Shown in pieces: positions 8,272-30,397 of a stretch of 64,000 bases of DNA. This DNA comes from Macrostomum lignano (lineage: Eukaryota), in the NCBI GenBank assembly GCA_002269645.1, contig NIVC01001550.1, positions 205,307 through 269,306 of the forward strand. The letters are read 5' to 3'. The notes beneath the pieces are model-generated. The model was given only the letters and a program-made list of their open reading frames with translations. It searched no databases and had not been told where the DNA came from. A program made the position numbers and the translations under genes. How positions within the stretch are numbered: position 1 is the stretch's first letter; every line of letters begins with the position of its first letter.

Positions 8272-9759
8272 TTACGCGCTGGCCTCCGCTGCCAATGTCC
8301 CGGATTCTGCGGAATCTGCCATTGTCTGCTGCTGCAGCCACCGCTGCTCTGTCTCCGGCTCCTCCAACTCGGCATCCTGCCTCGTCTGCAGATCTGCATC
8401 AACTTTCACTTCAGCATCCGCAATCAGTTCCGGCTCTGCTGCTTCTTCCACATCCGGACTGACTTCCGGCTCGGCTTTTGATGAAGCATTGGCAGCCTCC
8501 TCCCCGAGCTTGCCAGCCTCCGCAGGCTGCATCGCCGAGTCGACTTCGGCATCGGCTCCGGTAGCCTCGTCGAGCTCCTCCTCATCCGGCATCTCTTCGT
8601 CAACCTCGCCGTCTCCTTCTCCATCGCCCTCGCCGTCGATGGTGATGCTGTACTCGCCGGTCTCGTATCTGCGCTCGAGAAATTCGAGACACTCCGAGCT
8701 AGTCAGCTTAGTCTCGATGTTCCGCTTGGGCTCGTTGCCGGGATGCGTGACCTCGATGTGGCGGACCAAGTGATCCTTGCGGTAGTAGGACTTCTGACAG
8801 CAGCGGCAGGCGAACGGCTTGAAGCCGACGTGTTTCAGCGAGTGACGCTGCAGGTTGGAGCGCTGGGTGAAGCTGGCGCTGCAGAATGTGCACTTGTAGC
8901 TCTTGTGCAGCGAGTAGGTGTGCTTAGACAGGCTGGCCAGAGAGGCGAAGGCTTCGGGGCACTGATTGCAGGGGAAGCTGCGGTGACCCCCGCGGCGGGA
9001 GCGGAGGCCAAACAGGGAGCGGGACCGCTGGCCAGACCGCTTGGAGTCGCTCTGCGTCACATTGCCGCTGCTGACGCCGCTGTTGTTGCTGTTGCTGGTG
9101 TTGCTGCTACCGAGGATATCCAGACGAGCATCTGCTGTTGGGCTTTTTAACGAGTCCGAAACTGCTGACTGCTGCTGCTGTTGCTGCTGCTGCTGCGGTT
9201 GCTGCTGCTGCGGCCGAGTCGGCTGAAAGATCGCCGTAGGACTCGGGAAGACGCTGGCAGCAGTCAGGAAGCCAGTTGGCAGCAGGAAGTGCTGCTGGAA
9301 GCTCGGATTATTGACGTAGAAGCCGAGGCAGCCGCTGCCGCCAGTCTCCTTCTTGACTGTCGCGGCGCTGGGAGGATCGGCGCTGGCAGAGGCTGCCGCC
9401 GGGTCGCCGCCGGCGCCGCTGCTAGCCGCCACAAACGAGTCCAAACCGTTGGCAACCATCTTCTGCGGCGCCTGCGACTTTCGTTTCGACGATTTCTCGG
9501 CCTTGGATGTCGCCACCGCCTCCGCCGGTGCCGCTGCTGCCGCAACCGTTGCAGTCGCAGCAGCTGACGCCGCAGTAGTCCTCACTGCTGGCATCGGCGC
9601 CGCCGCCAGGTCCTCGACAATGTCCAGGAAGACGGCGGATTCGTCCGAGCCGTCCAGACGAACGCTGACCAGGCAGGTGACCCGGGCGGACCGTTCATAG
9701 CCGGGCAGGTGACTCCTAATAGCGTCTAACAGATCCGCGCGGAATTTGGCTCGGTCCAT
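8272..9759 (-). CDS. zfp-1: C2H2 zinc-finger transcription factor of the flatworm zfp-1 family (495 aa, single coding exon; an acceptor just before the ATG suggests an upstream non-coding exon ending near 10360)
   Basis: Three C2H2 fingers. Fingers 2 and 3 carry QRSNLQR and RKDHLVR, which I recall as the diagnostic residues of the planarian/schistosome zfp-1 family, followed by the C-terminal block HPGNEPKRNIETKLTSSECLEFL. PolyQ and acidic low-complexity regions are also present. Confidence 0.8.
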   Translation of the reverse strand: MDRAKFRADLLDAIRSHLPGYERSARVTCLVSVRLDGSDESAVFLDIVEDLAAAPMPAVRTTAASAAATATVAAAAAPAEAVATSKAEKSSKRKSQAPQKMVANGLDSFVAASSGAGGDPAAASASADPPSAATVKKETGGSGCLGFYVNNPSFQQHFLLPTGFLTAASVFPSPTAIFQPTRPQQQQPQQQQQQQQQSAVSDSLKSPTADARLDILGSSNTSNSNNSGVSSGNVTQSDSKRSGQRSRSLFGLRSRRGGHRSFPCNQCPEAFASLASLSKHTYSLHKSYKCTFCSASFTQRSNLQRHSLKHVGFKPFACRCCQKSYYRKDHLVRHIEVTHPGNEPKRNIETKLTSSECLEFLERRYETGEYSITIDGEGDGEGDGEVDEEMPDEEELDEATGADAEVDSAMQPAEAGKLGEEAANASSKAEPEVSPDVEEAAEPELIADAEVKVDADLQTRQDAELEEPETEQRWLQQQTMADSAESGTLAAEASA

Positions 9760-13595: not shown

Positions 13596-14334
13596 GCAAT
13601 TAATTTGATTTAATTTTTTATTAAACAATTTCAGACCACTTTGATCCCAAACACTCTACTACTCTGTCAATAGTAAGTAGCAAATAGCGTATGGATTATT
13701 CACTGTTAAGAGTAATTGGAACTGGCAGAATTCTGTGCTACGTTTTTCGACTAAAAGCTTGCGAATCGAGCTGCTGTTGATGAGTTAAAACCGAGTTCAG
13801 CAGATCATGCGGGGTTGAGCTTCGGTTCTTGAGCACCGAATTAAGAGATAAAGCAGAGATTTTCTTTTAATCTTCTCTCCCCTCATACATTAAAATCCTG
13901 CTTAGCTGTAAAGTTGATGATGCATGCAATAATTGCTATACCATAATCTTCGTGTTAAATAACTGCAGAGATCCCTGTTCCTTACCTAGCCCGGGAATTA
14001 ATCTTTATAGTGACTTCTTAGCTCGGGTTTCATACAGCAATAGATCAAGGAGAATTAGAAGTGGAAACTCGTTTCGGTGAGCAAATATACCAGAAAATGG
14101 CTTTTGATTGACCTTCCAATAATATATTTTTGTTTCAAACTGATTGTTACTATTTCTGGAGGCCTTCTGGGAGCCTAGGGTTTGAGCCTTCAAAAGTTTT
14201 TCCTAGAAACGATGTGTCCCATCCTTCTTATTAGAGGGAACAAAGCCTACCGTCATTTACATGTACTTTAACATGAAAGTATAAACAGCATTTAGGAATA
14301 TTCAAGACAATACGAAAAGTACTCCAGCAAAGAT

Positions 14335-14845
14335 TAGCGAATCAAATGGATCAGTGAACAGTCAGGCTAATTACGGTAACAGTTGCTCTCTCAGGTGTCA
14401 GCCGAGATTACAGAATCAAATGAATCTGTGAGCAGTCAGGCTAATTACGGTAACAGTTGCTCTCTCAGGTGTCAGCAGAGATTACCGAATCAAATGAATC
14501 TGTGAGCAGTCAGGATAATTACGGTAACAGTTGCTCTCTCAGGTGTCAGCAGAGATTACCGAATCAAATGAATCTGTGAACAGTCAGGATAATTACGGTA
14601 ACAGTTGCTCTCTCAGGTGTCAGCAGAGATTACCGAATCAAATGAATCTGTGAGCAGTCAGGATAATTACGGTAACAGTTGCTCTCTCAGGTGTCAGCAG
14701 AGATTACCGAATCAAATGAATCTGTGAGCAGTCAGGATAATTACGGTAACAGTTGCTCTCTCAGGTGTCAGCAGAGATTACCGAATCAAATGAATCTGTG
14801 AGCAGTCAGGATAATTACGGTAACAGTTGCTCTCTCAGGTGTCAG
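14335..14845. repeat. 74-bp tandem repeat, about 7 copies, starting about 35 nt past the pseudokinase stop codon
   Basis: GAATCAAATGAATCTGTGAGCAGTCAGGATAATTACGG...CAGCAGAGATTACC repeated. Confidence 0.95.
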
Positions 14846-14878: not shown

Positions 14879-17800
14879 CTAGCCGAACAAGCTGTACAGC
14901 ACGCGAGACCTGCTGGTGAAGTAGGAACCGACCATCCGGTCAGCGTCGTCACCAAGATTGGTGGCCGGCTTCGAAGGCGTCGGCTCCCTGTTGTAGCCCT
15001 GCATGATGAGGCTGTGTGCGAACCAGAGTCCCTCGGGAGGCTGGGCCATCTCCAGGGCCTCCCAGTTCGTGTTCTTAGGGGTGGCGAAGTTGTTGGATGA
15101 AGCAAAATCGATTGATAGCGGAAAAATTTATGACCTGAATTTACATTAATTTTGTTTGATTGGGGTGTGAACTTCGTTCAGACATCTCAATCGATTCTAA
15201 TCTCTGTCAGCTGGATGTCACATATCGATTCTAATCTCTGTCAGCTGGATGTCACATATCGATTCTAATCTCTGTCAGCTGGATGTCACATATCGATTCT
15301 AATCTCTGTCAGCTGGATGTCACATATCGATTCTAATCTCTGTCAGCTGGATGTCACATATCGATTCTAATCTCTGTCAGCTGGATGTCACATATCGATT
15401 CTAATCTCTGTCAGCTGGATGTCACATATCGATTCTAATCTCTGTCAGCTGGATGTCACATATCGATTCTAATCTCTGTCAGCTGGATGTCACATATCGA
15501 TTCTAATCTCTGTCAGCTGGATGTCACATATCGATTCTAATCTCTGTCAGCTGGATGTCACATATCGATTCCTGTACGTGGGGCCAAAAGCAGTGCAAAT
15601 GTCTAACTTAATGCGTGTACGCTCGTACTCACAATGAAATAGTTGTGCTCCATCATGAGCTGATAGCCTTTGAACTCGAACTCTCCGTAACCGGCATCGA
15701 GGTAGAAGTCGTTGCTAAAACCCGAACCCGAGGATTTAGGCTTTTGGGCGTTTTTCCCCGCCAATGAGGCCGAACAGTTCGTCTGGGGCATCAGCGCTGA
15801 TTTTCCCGGGCCAAGCGGCATCGGACGGCCTTCGTCGTCAAAATCGAGGCGCCATGACAGATGCTGTCCGGCCACTGGCGGCCGTTTTGGCAGCGGCCTC
15901 GCAGCCAGCCGAGGCTTCGGCAACGGCGGCGTCGAGTGCTGCGTGGCTGGCACGAGACCGACAGTCTGCGGCTTGGCGCGCTTCGACCGATGCCCGGCCG
16001 GCAGCTGAGGAGTCGGCTCCAGCATCGACCCGGACTCTGACACGGATGCTGATTTCGGCGTGCCGCCATTCTCGGCGTCCGCTGTTGCGGATAGCGGCGT
16101 CTTCCAGGACTCCCTGATTGATTTCATTGAAGCCGTGGACCAACCTTTCAGACGCCCTTTCGAAGCCTGGTCGAAGTACATGGACGAGCTCACTCGTGCC
16201 CGCTGCAACTCCTGCCTGCGCTGCCAGAGGCGCTCGTTTTTTTGCCTCCTTGATGGCGTCCCGCTGAGCGAAGTTGCCGGCGGCGCCCTGACTGCCACCG
16301 AAGCCGGTCATGGCTGTGCCGGCCGCAAACGAACTGGCCGCGCCCATGGATGCTCGAGAAATTCGAATCTGCCCGACCGCGTCGCTGTCGCTTTCGAAGC
16401 CTTCAAAATCATCAACTGGATCAATGAATTGGCTGGAGACGCGCGAATAGCCGGCCAGTTGGCTGGCGCTGCGCATCAACTCCAGCTCCAGTATTTTCTG
16501 TGCGCGGGTAAGCGGATACGGAGTCTATCATTGTCGGGGGTATTATTGACACATTGAAAGGCAGCTAACCGAGATTAGACAGAGCCGGACACCAACTTCT
16601 AATAGCTTCCCAGCCGTTATAGCTTCTTTATTAGCAAAATTTTAGCCTAGTGGTTAGAGCGTCGGACTCACGACTGAAAGACACTCAACTCTGCATTGCT
16701 TCAGCTCACCCAGCTGTAAAATGGGTGCCAGTATTAGCTGGGATAATTGAGGGTGTATGTGGCGACCCCCCCTCCCCCCAGTCCTTGGACTGAGCAGCCG
16801 TACGCAGCCTTCAGATGCGCCGCGCAATAGCTGCGGCTGAGCTGTCGGTTGCACATCTGCCCATTGGGACAGGTGTAATCAATTATTATTATCATATTAT
16901 TAACATAGCTCGTACAACACTACGCATTGCTACGAAGATATCTAAAACTTACTTCCTCTTCAGCTCTAGGAATGCGACTCCACGAGTAGCACAGGTCGGC
17001 TTCCATCCAGCTGGGCTGAAGACTCTCCAGTATTCGGCGCATCGCCTCCTTGGTGACAATTTTGTTCCTGATGTAGCGAACGAGCGCTCCGAAATTGTGA
17101 CAATCGCAGAGCTTCGGGTCCATGCACTCGGCCGTGAGGCGACACTTTGGACAGATGCCAACAAACACGTCCCTGCGCCTGTGGTCGTCGGCAGTTGAAT
17201 GCATGTGAGAGATGCTGAAGTGTCGAATATTGTCGCAGTGCAGAACTCCCAGCATAGCGGCGTATCGCAGAGCGTCCAGCTGGTGAGAAGCTTCGCCGAT
17301 TTTTTCGCAAAGCGACGTGTCGAAATCGGTAATCTGCGGCCGACCATAGTAGTCGAGCGCGATGCTGCACAGAGACAGATTGCCGTGATAGATGCAACTG
17401 TGGCGCATGAACTCCAAGCCCAGCAGAATGCAGGCGGCGTAATAGCGTACGCTATTGTGCGAGAGATGCACCACTAGCTTCTTGAGGTCGCTCAGGTACA
17501 TGTTCGGTGGCAGGGGAGCAATGACGAGCATGTCCCGTTGATGAAGTCTAGCCGCCACTACTGGCTGTACAAACGCTGTCATTCTGGCTAGGTCCGTTTG
17601 CACCTTAAAAACCGCTTTAAAACTCTTTATTATCCTCTTGCTCTCTTCGTCATCCCATTCGCGTAAAGATCGACTAGTGCACGCGTACCGGACGCCAGTG
17701 TCGGTGCAGCGAACGCATCTGCAAATCGAGGAGCCGAGGAGAATTAGGCGTATCAGGTGACTTACCGATCGGTTGCTTAATAATCTAGTCAAAGGTGCGC

Positions 17801-18317
17801 TGAAGAGGGGCACCGATTGAGGCTCTGAAGTGGGTCTAAAGTCGTGTTTAATGTGACCTAAGAGTCTTGTCCTGCGGTAAAGTGTCAAAAGGATGTAACT
17901 TGGTCTCGAAAGTGTATTCGAGTAAGCTGCCCATTGATGGTCAATTGATTCTTCGACGCTATGTGTATAGACTTTAAGGCTTTGGTGGAGTGGACGGACA
18001 ATTGATGGTGGACAAGCAATGGAGCACATGGCTATAATGTTATTTTAGTTAACTCTGCTATCTGCCATATGACTTGCTCAGACCTACCGAGTTCCATTCT
18101 GGACGCTCTGCCGGTGGTCCAGCCAGAAATCTCGCGTCATGTGCCTCAGATCGAATGAGCCGTCAACCAGCAGGATTCGACTTTTACGACGCTGCTTGCG
18201 TGAGTCAACGTCCATATCGCTGGATAGGCTGTAACTGAAATCAATGCTTTTTGAAGTCTTTGAACTCTGGTTCGGCTTTTGCTTTGCGTCACGTTTTGGC
18301 GAGATTTCTCCCGACAT
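14879..18317 (-). CDS. Tandem GRK/AGC-derived pseudokinase with two degenerate kinase domains; exons about 18317-18088, 17871-16953, 16497-15633 (needs a frame correction near 15840-15880), 15073-14879
   Basis: Domain 1: VRCTDTGVRYAC and VRYYAACILLGLEFMRHSCIYHGNLSLCSIALDYYGRPQITDFD align to GRK subdomains I-VII. Domain 2: FERASERLVHGFNEINQGVL, AEASAGCE and DDEGRP. The spliced junction gives EHNYFI|NTNWEALE, matching the AGC tail HPFF..I.W..L. GT-AG sites are in phase. The exon 2 acceptor and the start codon are uncertain. Confidence 0.65.
15191..15570. repeat. 34-bp minisatellite (TCGATTCTAATCTCTGTCAGCTGGATGTCACATA), about 11 copies, last intron of the pseudokinase
   Basis: Perfect tandem copies. 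Confidence 0.95.
16643..16865 (+). mobile_element. tRNA-derived CORE-like SINE, copy 1 (B-box region deleted), in a pseudokinase intron
   Basis: A-box TAGCCTAGTGG and tRNA-like head. The segment GACACTCAACTCTGCATTGCTTCAGCTCACCCAGCTGTAAAATGGG resembles the MIR/CORE domain. The 3' 87 nt differ at one position from the copy at 30156-30375. Confidence 0.8.
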
Positions 18318-19205: not shown

Positions 19206-19387
<182 letters not shown>

Positions 19388-19901: not shown

Positions 19902-22900
19902 TTAATAATCACGCTGGCCGTTGGCCTCGACCCCGGCTGGCACCTGTGGCAGCTGTCGCTGGACTCGCTTGGGCCGCCGGCGGGGCTGCCCAACTCGATG
20001 TGCCTCAGTTTCCTTTGTCGCCGAATCATCCTGGCCCTCGAACAATGCGGCGGTCTCCTGACCGCATCCGCCTCCGCCGCCGCTGTCATTGTCCTCCAGC
20101 GACACGAACGGCTGCAGCAGGTCAGCCGAGTGGTGCAGCAGCAGCAGGTAGCCCCGGCCCTCCGGGTGCGGCTCCAGCACGGCTACGCACCGCCGGTGCG
20201 GCACGTAGGCGAGGCTGGCCGGGGCCCGCAGGCCGTCGTGCCGGTCCATCAGGCCGCACAGCCGGCCGCTCGGCAGCAGGAGGCCGACGCAGGCGCCAGC
20301 CGCCACCAGCACGTTCCCGTCGTGGTCGGCGGCGACTCCGGCCACTTCCGGTCGGGGCTCGCTGAGTAGCCGGAAGCCCTCGCTGGGACAGTTGCGCAGC
20401 GGCCGGCCGCCGAAGCTGAAGATCTTCACCGAGGCGAAGTCGGCCACGACGATTCGACGATCGAGCGTCACCGCCACGGACTCCGGCCGCGTCAGCTGGG
20501 CGGGGCCGTCGCCCGGCTCGCCGAATTGACTGCGCAGGTTGCCATTGGCGAAGAGCACCACGATGCGGTGCCGAGCGCGATCGGACAGCACGAAGTAGTC
20601 GCTCTGGGTCACCGCCAGGCCTCTCGGCTCGAGCGGCTGGTGGCGCGGCTCGCCCGGCAGCAGCTTCAAGAAGTCGCCCTGCCTGTCGAACAGTTTTGCC
20701 AGATTCTGAACGGTGTCAGTCAGGGCGATGCAGCCGCTGCTGGTTATCGCGACGGCGAACGGCGCGTTCACGCTGTCCTCCTGCTGGCCGGGGCAGCCGA
20801 AGCACAGCTTCACGAGGCCGCGGTCGCTGACCACCACGATGCGGTGGTTGCCGGAGTCCGCCACCGCAAAGTCACCTGCGGGTTGGCGACGGGGACTTTG
20901 CTCCTTTAGAATGTCCTGCTCTGCTCTGCAATATCCTGTATCCTGCCCTGCTCTGCAATATCCTGTATCCTGCCCTGCTCTGCAATATCCTGCTCTGCTC
21001 CGCAATATCCTGCCCTGCTCTGCAATATCCTGACCTGCTCTGCAATATCCTGCCCTGCTCTGCAATATCCTGCCCTGCTCTGCAATATCCTGTATCCTGC
21101 CTTGCTCTGCAATATCCTGTATCCTGCCCTGCTCTGCAATATCCTGCCCTGCTCTGCAATATCCTGCCCTGCTCTGCAATATCCTGCTCTGCTCCGCAAT
21201 ATCCTGCCCTGCTCTGCAATATCCTGCCCTGCTCTGCAATATCCTGCCCTGCTCTGCAATATCCTGTATCCTGCCCTGCTCTGCAATATCCTGCCCTGCT
21301 CTGCAATATCCTGCTCTGCTCCGCAATATCCTGCCCTGCTCTGCAATATCCTGCTCTGCTCTGCAATATCCTGCCCTGCTCTGCAATATTCTGAACTGCT
21401 CTGCAATATCCTGAACTGCTCTGCAATATCTTGAACTGCTCTGCAATATCCTGCCCTGCTCTGCAATATCCTGCTCTGCTCTGCAATATCCTGCCCTGCT
21501 CTGCAATATCCTGCCCTGCTCTGCAATATCCTGCCCTGCTCTGCAATATCCTGCTCTGCTCCGCAATATCCTGCGCTGCTCCGCAATATCCTGCTCTGCT
21601 CCGCAATATCCTGCCCTGCTCTGCAAGGTGCTCTGCTCTGCAATATCCTGCCCTGCTCTGCAATATCCTGAACTGCTCTGCAATATCCTGAACTTCTCTG
21701 CAATATCCTGTTCTTTTCTGCAATATCCTGCTCTTCTCTGCAATATCCTGAACTGCTCTGCAATATCCTGAACTGCTCTGCAATATCCTGCTCTGCTCTG
21801 CAATATCCTGCTCTGCTCTGCAATATCATGCTCTGCTCTGCAATATCCTGCTCTGTTTTGCAATATCCTGCTCTGCTCTGCAATATCCTGCCCTGCTCTG
21901 CAATATCCTGAACTGCTCTGCAATATCCTGCCCTACTCTGCAATATCCTGAACTGCTCTGCAATATCCTGAACTTCTCTGCAATATCCTGAACTGCTCTG
22001 CAATATCCTGCCCTGCTCTGCAATATCCTGACCTGCTCTGCAATATCCTGCCCTGCTCTGCAATATCCTGCCCTGCTCTGCAATATCCTGTATCCTGCCT
22101 TGCTCTGCAATATCCTGAACTGCTCTGCAATATCCTAAACTGCTCTGCAATATCCTGAACTGCTCTGCAATATCCTAAACTGCTCTGCAATATCCTGAAC
22201 TGCTCTGCAATATCCTAAACTGCTCTGCAATATCCTGAACTGCTCTGCAATATCCTAAACTGCTCTGCAATATCCTGAACTGCTCTGCAATATCCTGAAC
22301 TGCTCTGCAATATCATGCTCTGCTCTGCAATATCCTGCTCTGCTCTGCAATATCCTGCTCTGCTCTGCAATATCATGCTCTGCTCTGCAATATCATGCTC
22401 TGTTTTGCAATATCCTGCTCTGCTCTGCAATATCCTGCTCTGTTTTGCAATATCCTGCTCTGCTCTGCAATATCCTGCTCTGCTCTGCAATATCATGCTC
22501 TGCTCTGCAATATCCTGCTCTGTTTTGCAATATCCTGCTCTGCTCTGCAATATCCTGCTCTGTTTTGCAATATCCTGCTCTGCTCTGCAATATCCTGCTC
22601 TGCTCTGCAATATCCTGCTCTGCTCTGCAATATCCTGCCCTACTCTGCAATATCCCGAACTGCTCTGCAATATCCTGAACTTCTCTGCAATATCCTGAAC
22701 TGCTCTGCAATATCATGCTCTGCTCTGCAATATCCTGCCCTGCTTTGCAATATCCTGCCCTACTCTGCAATATCCCGAACTGCTCTGCAATATCCTGAAC
22801 TTCTCTGCAATATCCTGAACTGCTCTGCAATATCCTGCCCTGCTCTGCAATATCATGCTCTGCTCTGCAATATCCTTAACTGCTCTGCAATATCCTGAAC

Positions 22901-23565
22901 TGCTCTGCAATATCATGCTCTGCTCTGCAATATCATGCTCTGCTCTGCAATATCCTGAACTGCTCTGCAATATCCTGAACTGCTCCGCAATATCCTAAAC
23001 TGCTCTGCAATATCCTGAACTGCTCTGCAATATCCTAAACTGCTCTGCAATATCCTGAACTGCTCTGAAATATCCTAAACTGCTCTGCAATATCCTGAAC
23101 TGCTCTGCAATATCCTGCCCTGCTCTGCAATATCCTGAACTGCTCTGCAACATCCTACTCTGCTCTGCAATATCCTGCTCTGCTCTGCAATATCCTGAAC
23201 TGCTCTGCAACATCCTACTCTGCTCTGCAATATCCTGAACTGCTCTGCAACATCCTACTCTGCTCTGCAATATCCTGAACTGCTCTGCAATATCCTGAAC
23301 TGCTCTGCAATATCCTGCTCCCGCCCTCACCTCCAAGCGTGACCGCCAGGCCGCGCGGCTGCCTAAGCGCGTTGCGCCCGGTCGGCGCGATTCGCACGAG
23401 CAGCCCGGCGCCGCCAACAGCCGGTAGCGGCGGCTCCGGCGGCTGCGGCTGCGACCGCTGCTGACCGACCGAGGCCGCCGCCCCAGCCAGGCGCCCGATC
23501 ATCCATTTCGTCTTGCCGGCGAAGGCTTCGGCAAAGCCGCCCAAAGTCTGGCGCATCGACTCCAT
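19902..23565 (-). CDS. NHL-repeat six-bladed beta-propeller protein; exons 23565(or 23814)-23331 and 20875-19902
   Basis: The phase-1 GT-AG splice joins LRQPRGLAVTLG|GDFAVADSGNHRI, a canonical NHL blade. Five more blades follow (PFAVAIT, PRGLAVT, PESVAVT, VAGVAAD, PASLAY). The ATG at 23565 has a strong ACCATGG context. Confidence 0.8.
20905..23320. repeat. 20-bp minisatellite (TGCTCTGCAA+TATCCTGCCC and variants), about 2.4 kb, filling nearly the whole NHL intron
   Basis: Tandem 10+10 units with variant blocks. Confidence 0.97.
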
Positions 23566-30155: not shown

Positions 30156-30375
30156 AATGGGCAGATGTGCAACCGACAGCTCAGCCGCAGCTATTGCGCG
30201 GCGCATCTGAAGGCTGCGTACGGCTGTTCAGTCCAAGGACTGGGGGGGGGTCGCCACACACACCCTCAATTACCCCCATCTAGTCTTGCTTAAGGACACA
30301 AATTGTTCCGAGTGGGATCGAGAATCGAACCCCCGACCTTCAAGTCGTGAGTCCGACGCTCTGATCACTAGGCTA
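30156..30375 (-). mobile_element. tRNA-derived CORE-like SINE, copy 2 (intact A and B boxes, part of CORE deleted)
   Basis: The minus strand reads TAGCCTAGTGATCAGAGCGTCGGACTCACGACTTGAAGGTCGGGGGTTCGATTCTCG (tRNA-Val(CAC)-like head), then TGTGTCCTTAAGCAAGAC (CORE-like), then the same 3' tail as copy 1. Confidence 0.85.
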
Positions 30376-30397
30376 CAACCCCCTATCAACTGTAGAT

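Follow-up and report, generated by a model that had tools for sequence, protein, structure and literature searches.

A probable pseudokinase gene of AGC kinase ancestry and its paralogs in Macrostomum lignano

Gene structure and gene copies

The window analyzed here is a 64,000-nt stretch of the Macrostomum lignano genome (NCBI GenBank assembly GCA_002269645.1, contig NIVC01001550.1, positions 205,307 to 269,306 of the forward strand), and it carries on its minus strand a four-exon gene that probably encodes a catalytically inactive protein derived from the AGC kinases. Six-frame translation and inspection of the splice sites placed the ATG at position 18317 and the stop codon at position 14879 (Table 1). 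This coding span is exactly the one that a first-pass annotation, made from the DNA sequence alone, had assigned to a spliced gene. All three introns are of the GT..AG type with canonical splice sites, the donor of exon 1 (CG/GTAGGT) is in phase 2, and an in-frame stop codon lies just upstream of the ATG in exon 1. Exon 1 is identical in the homeologous gene at locus L001, and its start Met is shared by the annotated proteins P0001 and P0002.

The window copy is present in GenBank as BOX15_Mlig007152g2 (PAA66566.1, 551 amino acids [aa]), a model that was read through a frameshift at a run of seven A residues (A7). With this run corrected to A6, our model encodes 684 aa and shows 99% full-length identity to PAA90060.1 (BOX15_Mlig007152g1 hypothetical protein, 684 aa). 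In GenBank and UniProt the protein is uncharacterised and goes under the labels "protein kinase domain-containing" or hypothetical. The layout had been thought to be that of no described protein; it is in fact already deposited as a hypothetical protein (PAA66566.1, and in intact form PAA90060.1 and PAA89174.1), though uncharacterised. The GenBank gene models of assembly Mlig_3_7 derive from a genome-guided RNA-seq transcriptome, and transcripts that are at least 95% identical were given a common name prefix (PMC5730564). A transcript model based on RNA-seq therefore exists for the gene, although multi-mapping leaves expression of the window copy itself unproven. Mlig007152 was not found in the searchable full texts or in the supplements of two M. 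lignano transcriptome papers, in which we found no expression, localisation or interaction data, and we found no literature on the protein.

The family comprises five gene copies in M. lignano, three in paralog group A and two in paralog group B; four of the five copies are intact. Group A comprises the window copy, Mlig007152.g1 on NIVC01000127.1 (locus L001) and Mlig010400.g1 on NIVC01000162.1 (locus L004; PAA89174.1, 684 aa); group B comprises Mlig006990.g1/g2 (728 aa, locus L003). The window and L001 copies are collinear, with approximately 97-98% identity over exons, introns and flanks, which fits the 180 Mb of duplicated blocks of at least 95% identity reported for this M. lignano line (PMC5730564). 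Their exons differ at 12 of 2055 positions (0.6%; 6 synonymous and 6 not) and by a single A7/A6 indel, and their introns 1 and 2 show 23 differences (approximately 2.9%) and 47 gap columns in 824 nt. The four-exon structure and the intron phases are common to groups A and B, and the last exon is 195 nt long in both.

Table 1. Coordinates of the gene and its features in the 64,000-nt window.
Feature	Position	Strand	Description
Exon 1	18088..18317	-	aa 1-77; Lys/Arg-rich N-terminus and start of the kinase-like domain (RILLVDGSFD..DFWLD..)
Intron 1	17719..18087	-	369 nt, GT..AG; 8 substitutions and 20 gap columns relative to L001
Exon 2	16953..17718	-	aa 78-332; bulk of the kinase-like domain
Intron 2	16498..16952	-	455 nt; dispersed ~250-bp repeat inside
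Exon 3	15633..16497	-	865 nt (1 mod 3); linker and start of the conserved tail; 864 nt in the two intact copies
Intron 3	15074..15632	-	559 nt; mostly a 34-bp minisatellite
Exon 4	14879..15073	-	195 nt (64 aa + TAG); conserved C-terminal tail NTNWEALE.AQPPEGLWFA..LIMQ.Y...GSYFTSRSRVLYSLFG
Kinase-like (putative pseudokinase) domain	16968..18182	-	aa 46-327, spans intron 1; sub-threshold Pfam Pkinase match and profile searches
Degenerate catalytic loop YHGNLSLCS	17364..17390	-	HMMER alignments to PKC-theta and PKN; HRD to HGN, loop Lys to Ser, loop Asn to Ser
DFD replacing DFG	17319..17327	-	DLD in paralog B
Conserved Cys cluster CPKCRLTAECMDPKLCDC	17100..17153	-	within the putative lengthened activation segment; followed by a putative APE remnant (TAE/DPK) and alphaF (NFGALVRYI)
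Linker	15684..16967	-	aa 328-603 of the intact reading; Ser/Ala/Gly/Pro-rich, with proline-rich stretches (PPLPKPRLAARPLPKRPP) and a conserved island HRSKR
Conserved C-terminal block	14882..15683	-	aa 604-684, spans intron 3; 55% identical to paralog B
A7 homopolymer	16237..16243	-	A6 in both other group A copies; +1 frameshift
Premature stop in shifted frame	15838..15840	-	end of the 551-aa PAA66566.1

The kinase-like domain

The kinase-like domain is preceded by approximately 45 low-complexity residues, and exon 2 encodes its beta-3 strand (VRYACT), alphaC, alphaE (YYAACILLGLEFM), the HGN loop, the DFD motif, a Cys/His-rich block after DFD and a putative alphaF. The motifs that had been quoted for this domain all lie in the coding frame (TDTGVRYAC, aa 82-90; YYAACILLGLEFM, aa 169-181; YHGNLSLCS, aa 187-195; DFD, aa 208-210), and the two losses that had been noted along with them are also real: GxGxxG is absent in either possible register of the N-terminal strands, and the beta-3 Lys is replaced by Thr (YAC-T where AGC kinases have YA-x-K). 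The HMMER alignments placed HGN opposite [HY]RD, Ser opposite both the Lys and the Asn of the catalytic loop, and DFD opposite DFG. Paralog B has the same catalytic substitutions, and its YHGNLSLCS loop is unchanged but for one residue. Neither paralog group possesses the motif set of an active kinase (GxGxxG, VAIK Lys, HRD Asp, loop Asn and DFG), and by sequence criteria the domain is thus a predicted pseudokinase.

We compared the two paralog groups by Nei-Gojobori counts. For the kinase-like domain (aa 46-327), the proportions of changed non-synonymous (pN) and synonymous (pS) sites were 0.175 and 0.654, giving an omega (dN/dS) of approximately 0.13. The part after DFD (aa 211-327) was the most constrained region, with an omega of approximately 0.08, and the C-terminal block (aa 604-684) gave approximately 0.32. 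Synonymous change on the domain unambiguously exceeds non-synonymous change despite saturation, which indicates that the family is not a decaying pseudogene. An omega of approximately 0.13 rather than near 1, introns with conserved phases and four intact copies all agree on this point. The proposal of a dead kinase-like domain kept in a spliced gene is upheld, with an ancestry in the AGC kinases in general.

That ancestry was examined by several searches. Pfam Pkinase (PF00069) aligned to aa 137-213 only, with 16.0 bits for the window model and 17.9 bits for the paralog (gathering cut-off, 31.7). We then built a two-sequence profile from the A and B domains and queried 1.84 billion representative proteins and the PDB with it. 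The former search returned six family members, all of them M. lignano predictions and several from the older error-rich assembly, and 17 non-family matches at E<=1e-3 (best E=2.5e-7). A Pfam scan of ten non-family matches identified eight as ordinary Pkinase proteins, and most of the remote matches that we read carry the AGC signatures RFYAAEIVLALEYLH and FYAACCVLGLEFLH and HPFF..NW tails. Neither relatives closer than ordinary kinases nor orthologs outside M. lignano were detected among the 1.84 billion representatives. The PDB search retrieved almost only AGC kinases, with marginal E-values (approximately 1e-3): PKC-theta scored 22.0 bits, Candida Pkh 21.1, GRK2 20.9, PKN1 20.8 and STK32A 20.6, followed by PKC-eta, PKA, AKT and PDK1. 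An hhalign comparison with an AGC alignment gave 99.1% probability over alphaC to DFG, a value obtained with a circular selection.

Structure prediction was in line with these matches over the same part of the domain. AlphaFold2 (AF2), supplied with a multiple sequence alignment that contained AGC kinases, gave a kinase topology, with beta-3, alphaC, beta-4/5, alphaD, alphaE and beta-7/8 in order (aa ~87-209), at a predicted local distance difference test (pLDDT) score of 57-74, and the score fell below 50 outside beta-3 to DFD. All Foldseek matches of this model were kinases, a result biased by the alignment; they came from every kinase group and showed no preference for AGC kinases or GRKs. 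The full-length AF2 model built from the two-sequence family alignment had a pLDDT of 31 and was unusable. Overall, an AGC ancestry of the domain is supported by its sequence matches, with marginal statistics.

Two candidates for a closer relationship were rejected. The unnamed protein P0010 (284 aa), which has HGD and DFD, matches from alphaC to DFD only and at 30-35% identity, like other kinases. The kinase gene adjoining paralog B, considered as a parent of the family, is an ordinary active kinase (HRDIKCDN, DFG) and not an obvious parent.

The first-pass annotation had derived the gene from a G protein-coupled receptor kinase (GRK), reading it as a tandem double pseudokinase that arose when a dead GRK domain was duplicated internally and that possibly acts as a decoy or scaffold in the desensitisation of G protein-coupled receptors. 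The core is indeed of the type that GRKs share with other AGC kinases, GRK2/3 are among the best sequence matches in the PDB, and TG..YAC and LGLE.M resemble motifs of GRK4-6 and GRK2; the DLD of paralog B also recalls the DLG of GRKs. However, the score of GRK2 lies within 1.5 bits of those of PKC-theta, Pkh, PKN1 and STK32A and is thus no better than that of other AGC families, and the PKN-like proteins P0018, P0019 and P0022 match YAAC..LGLEFLH no less closely. Unlike GRKs, the protein lacks the RGS-homology domain and the GRK N-terminal region, and only approximately 45 residues precede the kinase-like domain. Pfam at E<=10 found neither an RGS nor a PH domain in the full-length model, in agreement with what had been seen by eye, and revealed no accessory domain. 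GRK parentage in particular is therefore not sustained, and nothing ties the protein to signalling by G protein-coupled receptors. The duplication component of the proposal is already contradicted by the linker described below, and we consider the proposal as a whole barely tenable.

It is also improbable, in our judgement, that the domain is still an enzyme, either as an atypical kinase with relocated residues, as in WNK, or with another nucleotide-dependent activity, as in SelO. Such an activity would be compatible with the Asp of DFG, which is kept in both paralogs, and with the low omega (approximately 0.08) and the invariant His, Cys and Asp residues of the region after DFD. Against it, the Gly-rich loop, beta-3 Lys, catalytic Asp, loop Lys and loop Asn have been lost together, and a compensating Lys is not evident in beta-2 or in the Gly-rich loop region in either register.

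The region after DFD is the most conserved part of the protein, being 71% identical between the paralogs with no gaps. Its His and Cys residues are invariant between them, including those of CPKC-x5-C-x5-C-x-C, and a cluster of this composition could possibly bind a metal. MAFFT aligned TAECMDPK...FGALVRYI with T..YMAPE...DWWSLGVIIYEM / DWWSLGV; this placement of the APE-like motif would make the segment from DFD to APE approximately 30 residues longer than usual. Searched alone, the region (aa 208-346) gave only P=0.073 against the AGC alignment in hhalign and no PDB match at E<=10. We also considered a cryptic partial duplication within the domain, by which LRYAAMLGVLHCDN.IRHFSIS after DFD would be a second degenerate alphaE-HRD-DFG. 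Both hhalign and BLASTP did place the LRYAAMLGVLHCDN stretch opposite the alphaE/HRD region of kinases, but neither match was significant (hhalign, the P=0.073 just given; BLASTP, E=0.16-0.49), and shuffle tests of the internal alignment gave p=0.05 for group A, p=0.11 for group B and p=0.19 for a wider segment. On these shuffle values (p=0.05-0.19) an internal alphaE/HRD duplication was rejected, and we regard it as very improbable.

Linker, C-terminal tail and proposed architecture

The region downstream of the kinase-like domain had been taken for a second, more eroded pseudokinase. Pfam at E<=10 found nothing in the linker and no kinase match in aa 333-684, the best BLASTP match of the linker to the first domain had E=3, and the linker has a disorder-type composition, with disorder-promoting residues making up 66% of it. 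It is the least conserved region of the protein: identity to paralog B is 27% with 89 gap columns, compared with 68% and no gaps for the kinase-like domain, and at a pN of 0.53 between groups A and B the alignment is barely better than random. The linker thus evolves freely, yet it remains an open reading frame. The protein has no second kinase domain, and an internal duplication was not detectable.

HG and GRP, the motifs that the two halves were thought possibly to share, do not lie in one reading frame. SICHG (15865-15851) belongs to a third frame that contains several stops, and DDEGRP (15839-15822) to the coding frame; the two are 12 nt apart, and the true frame there reads ...AGQHLSWRLDFDDEGRP... 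The apparent motif pair therefore stems from frame mixing. Rejecting a tandem GRK-derived double pseudokinase keeps a false architecture out of the record.

Three older predictions from the ML2 assembly, P0003, P0005 and P0006 (A0A1I8JRV8, A0A1I8FKA2 and A0A1I8FRY3), contain frame errors in which all three frames of exon 3 are mixed. One older ML2 prediction contains SICHG, and one is named "Rad51 domain-containing". These three entries are annotation artefacts and not additional members of the family.

The C-terminal tail is conserved between the paralogs in the pattern F.F..YQ.MM.H.YF...NW..LE.AQPPEG.WFA..LIMQ.Y...GSYFTSRSR.LY..FG. In comparison with the AGC alignment, hhalign placed YQLMMEHNYFINTNWEALE on INEIKAHPFFEGFNWKQLF, which is the end of alphaI and the start of the C-tail, with P=2.3e-4 to 4.3e-4 and a probability of 34-45%, and the alignment falls at the position expected from the AGC template (YQ.MM.H.YF...NW..LE..QPP). 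Pkinase_C had no match in the tail at E<=10. The tail alone matched nothing in Pfam, and its PDB search was negative but for a chance match to carboxypeptidase A1 (E=1.1). No hydrophobic motif of the form FD..F or FxxF[ST][FY] was recognisable in the tail sequence. The earlier description of an intact AGC tail is weakly confirmed: the start of the tail aligns weakly to the HPFF..NW..L block of AGC kinases (P=2.3e-4, 45%), but "intact" was an overstatement in view of the Pkinase_C and PDB results. We think it fairly likely that the block is a remnant of the end of the AGC core plus tail; if so, the linker would have been inserted into the loop between alphaH and alphaI within one AGC unit.

Our preferred explanation, to which we assign a probability of roughly 0.7, is that the gene encodes a single catalytically dead kinase domain derived from the AGC kinases, followed by a fast-evolving linker of the disorder type and a conserved tail, and that it is one of three near-identical copies. 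According to this explanation, aa 46-327 would form a pseudokinase in which the Gly-rich loop, the beta-3 Lys, the catalytic Asp, the loop Lys and Asn, and the Gly of DFG have all been replaced, and in which a lengthened activation segment would bear the conserved Cys/His cluster. The disorder-type linker (aa 328-603) would be inserted within one unit of AGC core and tail and would not be a second domain, and the first ~25 residues of the conserved tail (aa 604-684) most likely correspond to the end of alphaI and the start of the C-tail of AGC kinases. The protein would then be unable to phosphorylate, would probably not bind ATP, and may serve as a scaffold or adaptor with no catalytic role. 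A binding surface could be provided by the pseudokinase domain, with its Cys/His-rich module in the activation segment, and the tail could dock back in cis on the N-lobe of the pseudokinase, like the tails of AGC kinases and Tribbles, or recruit a partner. The linker might supply short docking motifs, such as proline stretches of the PLPKPR/RPLPKRP type and the conserved HRSKR, and a nuclear signal may reside in the basic N-terminus (RKQRRKSR).

Several points weigh against this explanation. The resemblance to kinases falls short of the curated threshold of Pfam and extends only from alphaC to DFD. Beyond DFD, the C-lobe matched nothing significantly and was modelled with a pLDDT below 50. The alignment of the tail to AGC kinases reaches a probability of 45% at best, with negative Pkinase_C and PDB results and no recognisable hydrophobic motif. 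The dS between the paralogs is saturated and the omega values are rough; with no orthologs found beyond M. lignano, the case for constraint rests on two paralog groups. The functions as a scaffold and in tail docking are ones that we infer.

A more far-reaching version, which we regard as unlikely, is that this is a Macrostomum-restricted family in which an AGC kinase had its catalysis erased, its activation segment swapped for a Cys/His module and its core split, and acquired a tail that works as a long-range switch. The module, H-C...H...H...CPKC-x5-C-x5-C-x-C, would then possibly bind zinc, the disordered insertion of ~275 aa just before alphaI would split the core, and the tail would be a regulated switch for docking in cis or for binding a partner.

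The AGC kinases (PKC-theta, PKN1/2, GRK2/3, PDK1/Pkh, AKT, PKA and STK32A) are the best and almost the sole sequence matches of the protein that we propose to be a single-domain pseudokinase. They share with it the alphaE motif [FY]YAA[CE]I.LGLE[FY][LM]H and an equal spacing from alphaC to DFG, and its block H-x-[FY]-F...[ND]-W-x-x-L, followed by PP, resembles the end of their core and their C-lobe tether. Unlike them, the protein retains only the Asp of DFG among the catalytic residues, matches Pfam below the threshold, and has a C-lobe that is unrecognisable by sequence. It also differs in the ~275 aa that separate the kinase-like domain from the HxYF..NW block, in having no recognisable hydrophobic or turn motif, and in the absence of C1, C2, PH, RGS and HR1 domains.

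Pseudokinases are common, but those derived from AGC kinases are rare. RPS6KC1/RSKL1 and RPS6KL1/RSKL2 are human degenerate AGC-derived pseudokinases, and the kinase-like domain of RPS6KC1 is broken by long inserts; to our knowledge, this RSKL pair are the only human AGC-derived pseudokinases. They carry MIT (and PX) domains. The M. lignano protein is likewise degenerate and apparently AGC-derived, but it has no MIT or PX match in Pfam, and we detected no sequence relationship to the pair. Tribbles has a dead CAMK-like kinase domain and a conserved C-terminal tail motif that docks on the alphaC region of the same protein and, once released, binds a partner. We use it as a working analogy only: the Tribbles linker is short, its tail motifs are different, and homology was not detected.

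Inserts after DFG are present in Greatwall/MASTL and NDR/LATS, and the plant and fungal AGCVIII kinases have DFD and an insert; all of these are active kinases. TDFD.SLC shows the same pattern as the plant-type AGCVIII match P0011, and the putative lengthened activation segment and the long non-conserved insert within an AGC unit likewise recall these split-core kinases. In those kinases the large insert separates DFG from APE; the ~275-aa insert of the M. lignano protein instead follows the putative alphaH, and the resemblance is probably convergent.

The protein thus appears to be a lineage-restricted pseudokinase of AGC ancestry and a modest addition to the lineage-specific pseudokinases. 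Purifying selection maintains both paralog groups of the family in this regeneration model organism, despite the lack of detectable orthologs among the 1.84 billion representatives. M. lignano has established protocols for RNA interference and in situ hybridisation, which makes the function of the gene testable.

Frameshift, repeats and neighboring genes

Neither the length of exon 3 nor the frameshift at A7 had been noted in the first-pass annotation. The extra A truncates the tail in the window copy, and it may be real or an assembly error. If it is real, Mlig007152.g2 would be a decaying homeolog that yields at most a 551-aa product without the tail, and the two intact copies of group A would be the functional ones. 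We regard this as possible, though with a chance clearly short of even.

The A7 run is unique to the window copy among the group A genes, and the assembly was polished by Pilon with Illumina and RNA-seq reads (PMC5730564), so that a leftover homopolymer error would not be assumed by default. Six substitutions (3 synonymous and 3 not) occur in the window copy alone, and all of them lie 3' of A7, at positions 1519-2028 of the coding sequence (about 15974-14908 in the window), and redundancy is available, since the DV1 line has extra copies of large-chromosome material (PMC5730564). Against a true frameshift, the extra A lacks independent confirmation, an 8.5-kb stretch of the Mlig_3_7 contig NIVC01001550.1 being byte-identical to the window, which is thus the same assembly, and polishing is unreliable where three copies of approximately 98% identity draw multi-mapping reads. 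Sites at which either of the other two copies differs alone are equally clustered, which suggests that the clusters are recombinant haplotype blocks and do not reflect relaxed constraint. Other disabling mutations are absent, and the splice sites and the remaining open reading frame are intact. The frameshift flags a probable annotation problem in PAA66566.1.

The dispersed ~250-bp repeat of intron 2 occupies 16640-16895, and copies that are 85-94% identical occur at 30156-30378 and at positions 1160-1458 of L003, the latter in an intron of the kinase gene adjoining paralog B. By eye the repeat is partly tRNA-like; ARAGORN and Rfam gave no match. The minisatellite of intron 3 (15190-15571) is a perfect array of 11.2 copies of a 34-bp unit with 100% matches. 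In L001 the array has approximately 19 copies (8773-9426), and its length thus differs between near-identical gene copies.

The kinase gene adjoining paralog B (L003, 1-2666, minus strand) is apparently active (HRDIKCDN, DFG) and is transcribed divergently from paralog B, with its start approximately 335 nt upstream of the paralog B ATG. We saw no such neighbor next to the window copy. The downstream neighbor of the window copy (8272-9759, minus strand) is a 495-aa open reading frame with a C2H2 zinc finger (Pfam E=4e-10), and the same neighbor follows the homeolog in L001.

Immediately downstream of the gene, a 74-bp tandem array (14325-14845; 7 copies, 97% matches) starts 34 nt past the stop codon and is probably part of the 3' untranslated region; it is longer in L001. 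Each unit bears an open reading frame of 40 codons that is surely spurious. Upstream of the gene are a (CT)88 microsatellite (19208-19384) and a 2.4-kb array of 118 copies of a 20-bp unit (20939-23318). Dozens of unrelated minisatellite arrays are spread across the 64-kb window, consistent with the reported tandem-repeat content of approximately 15% of the genome.

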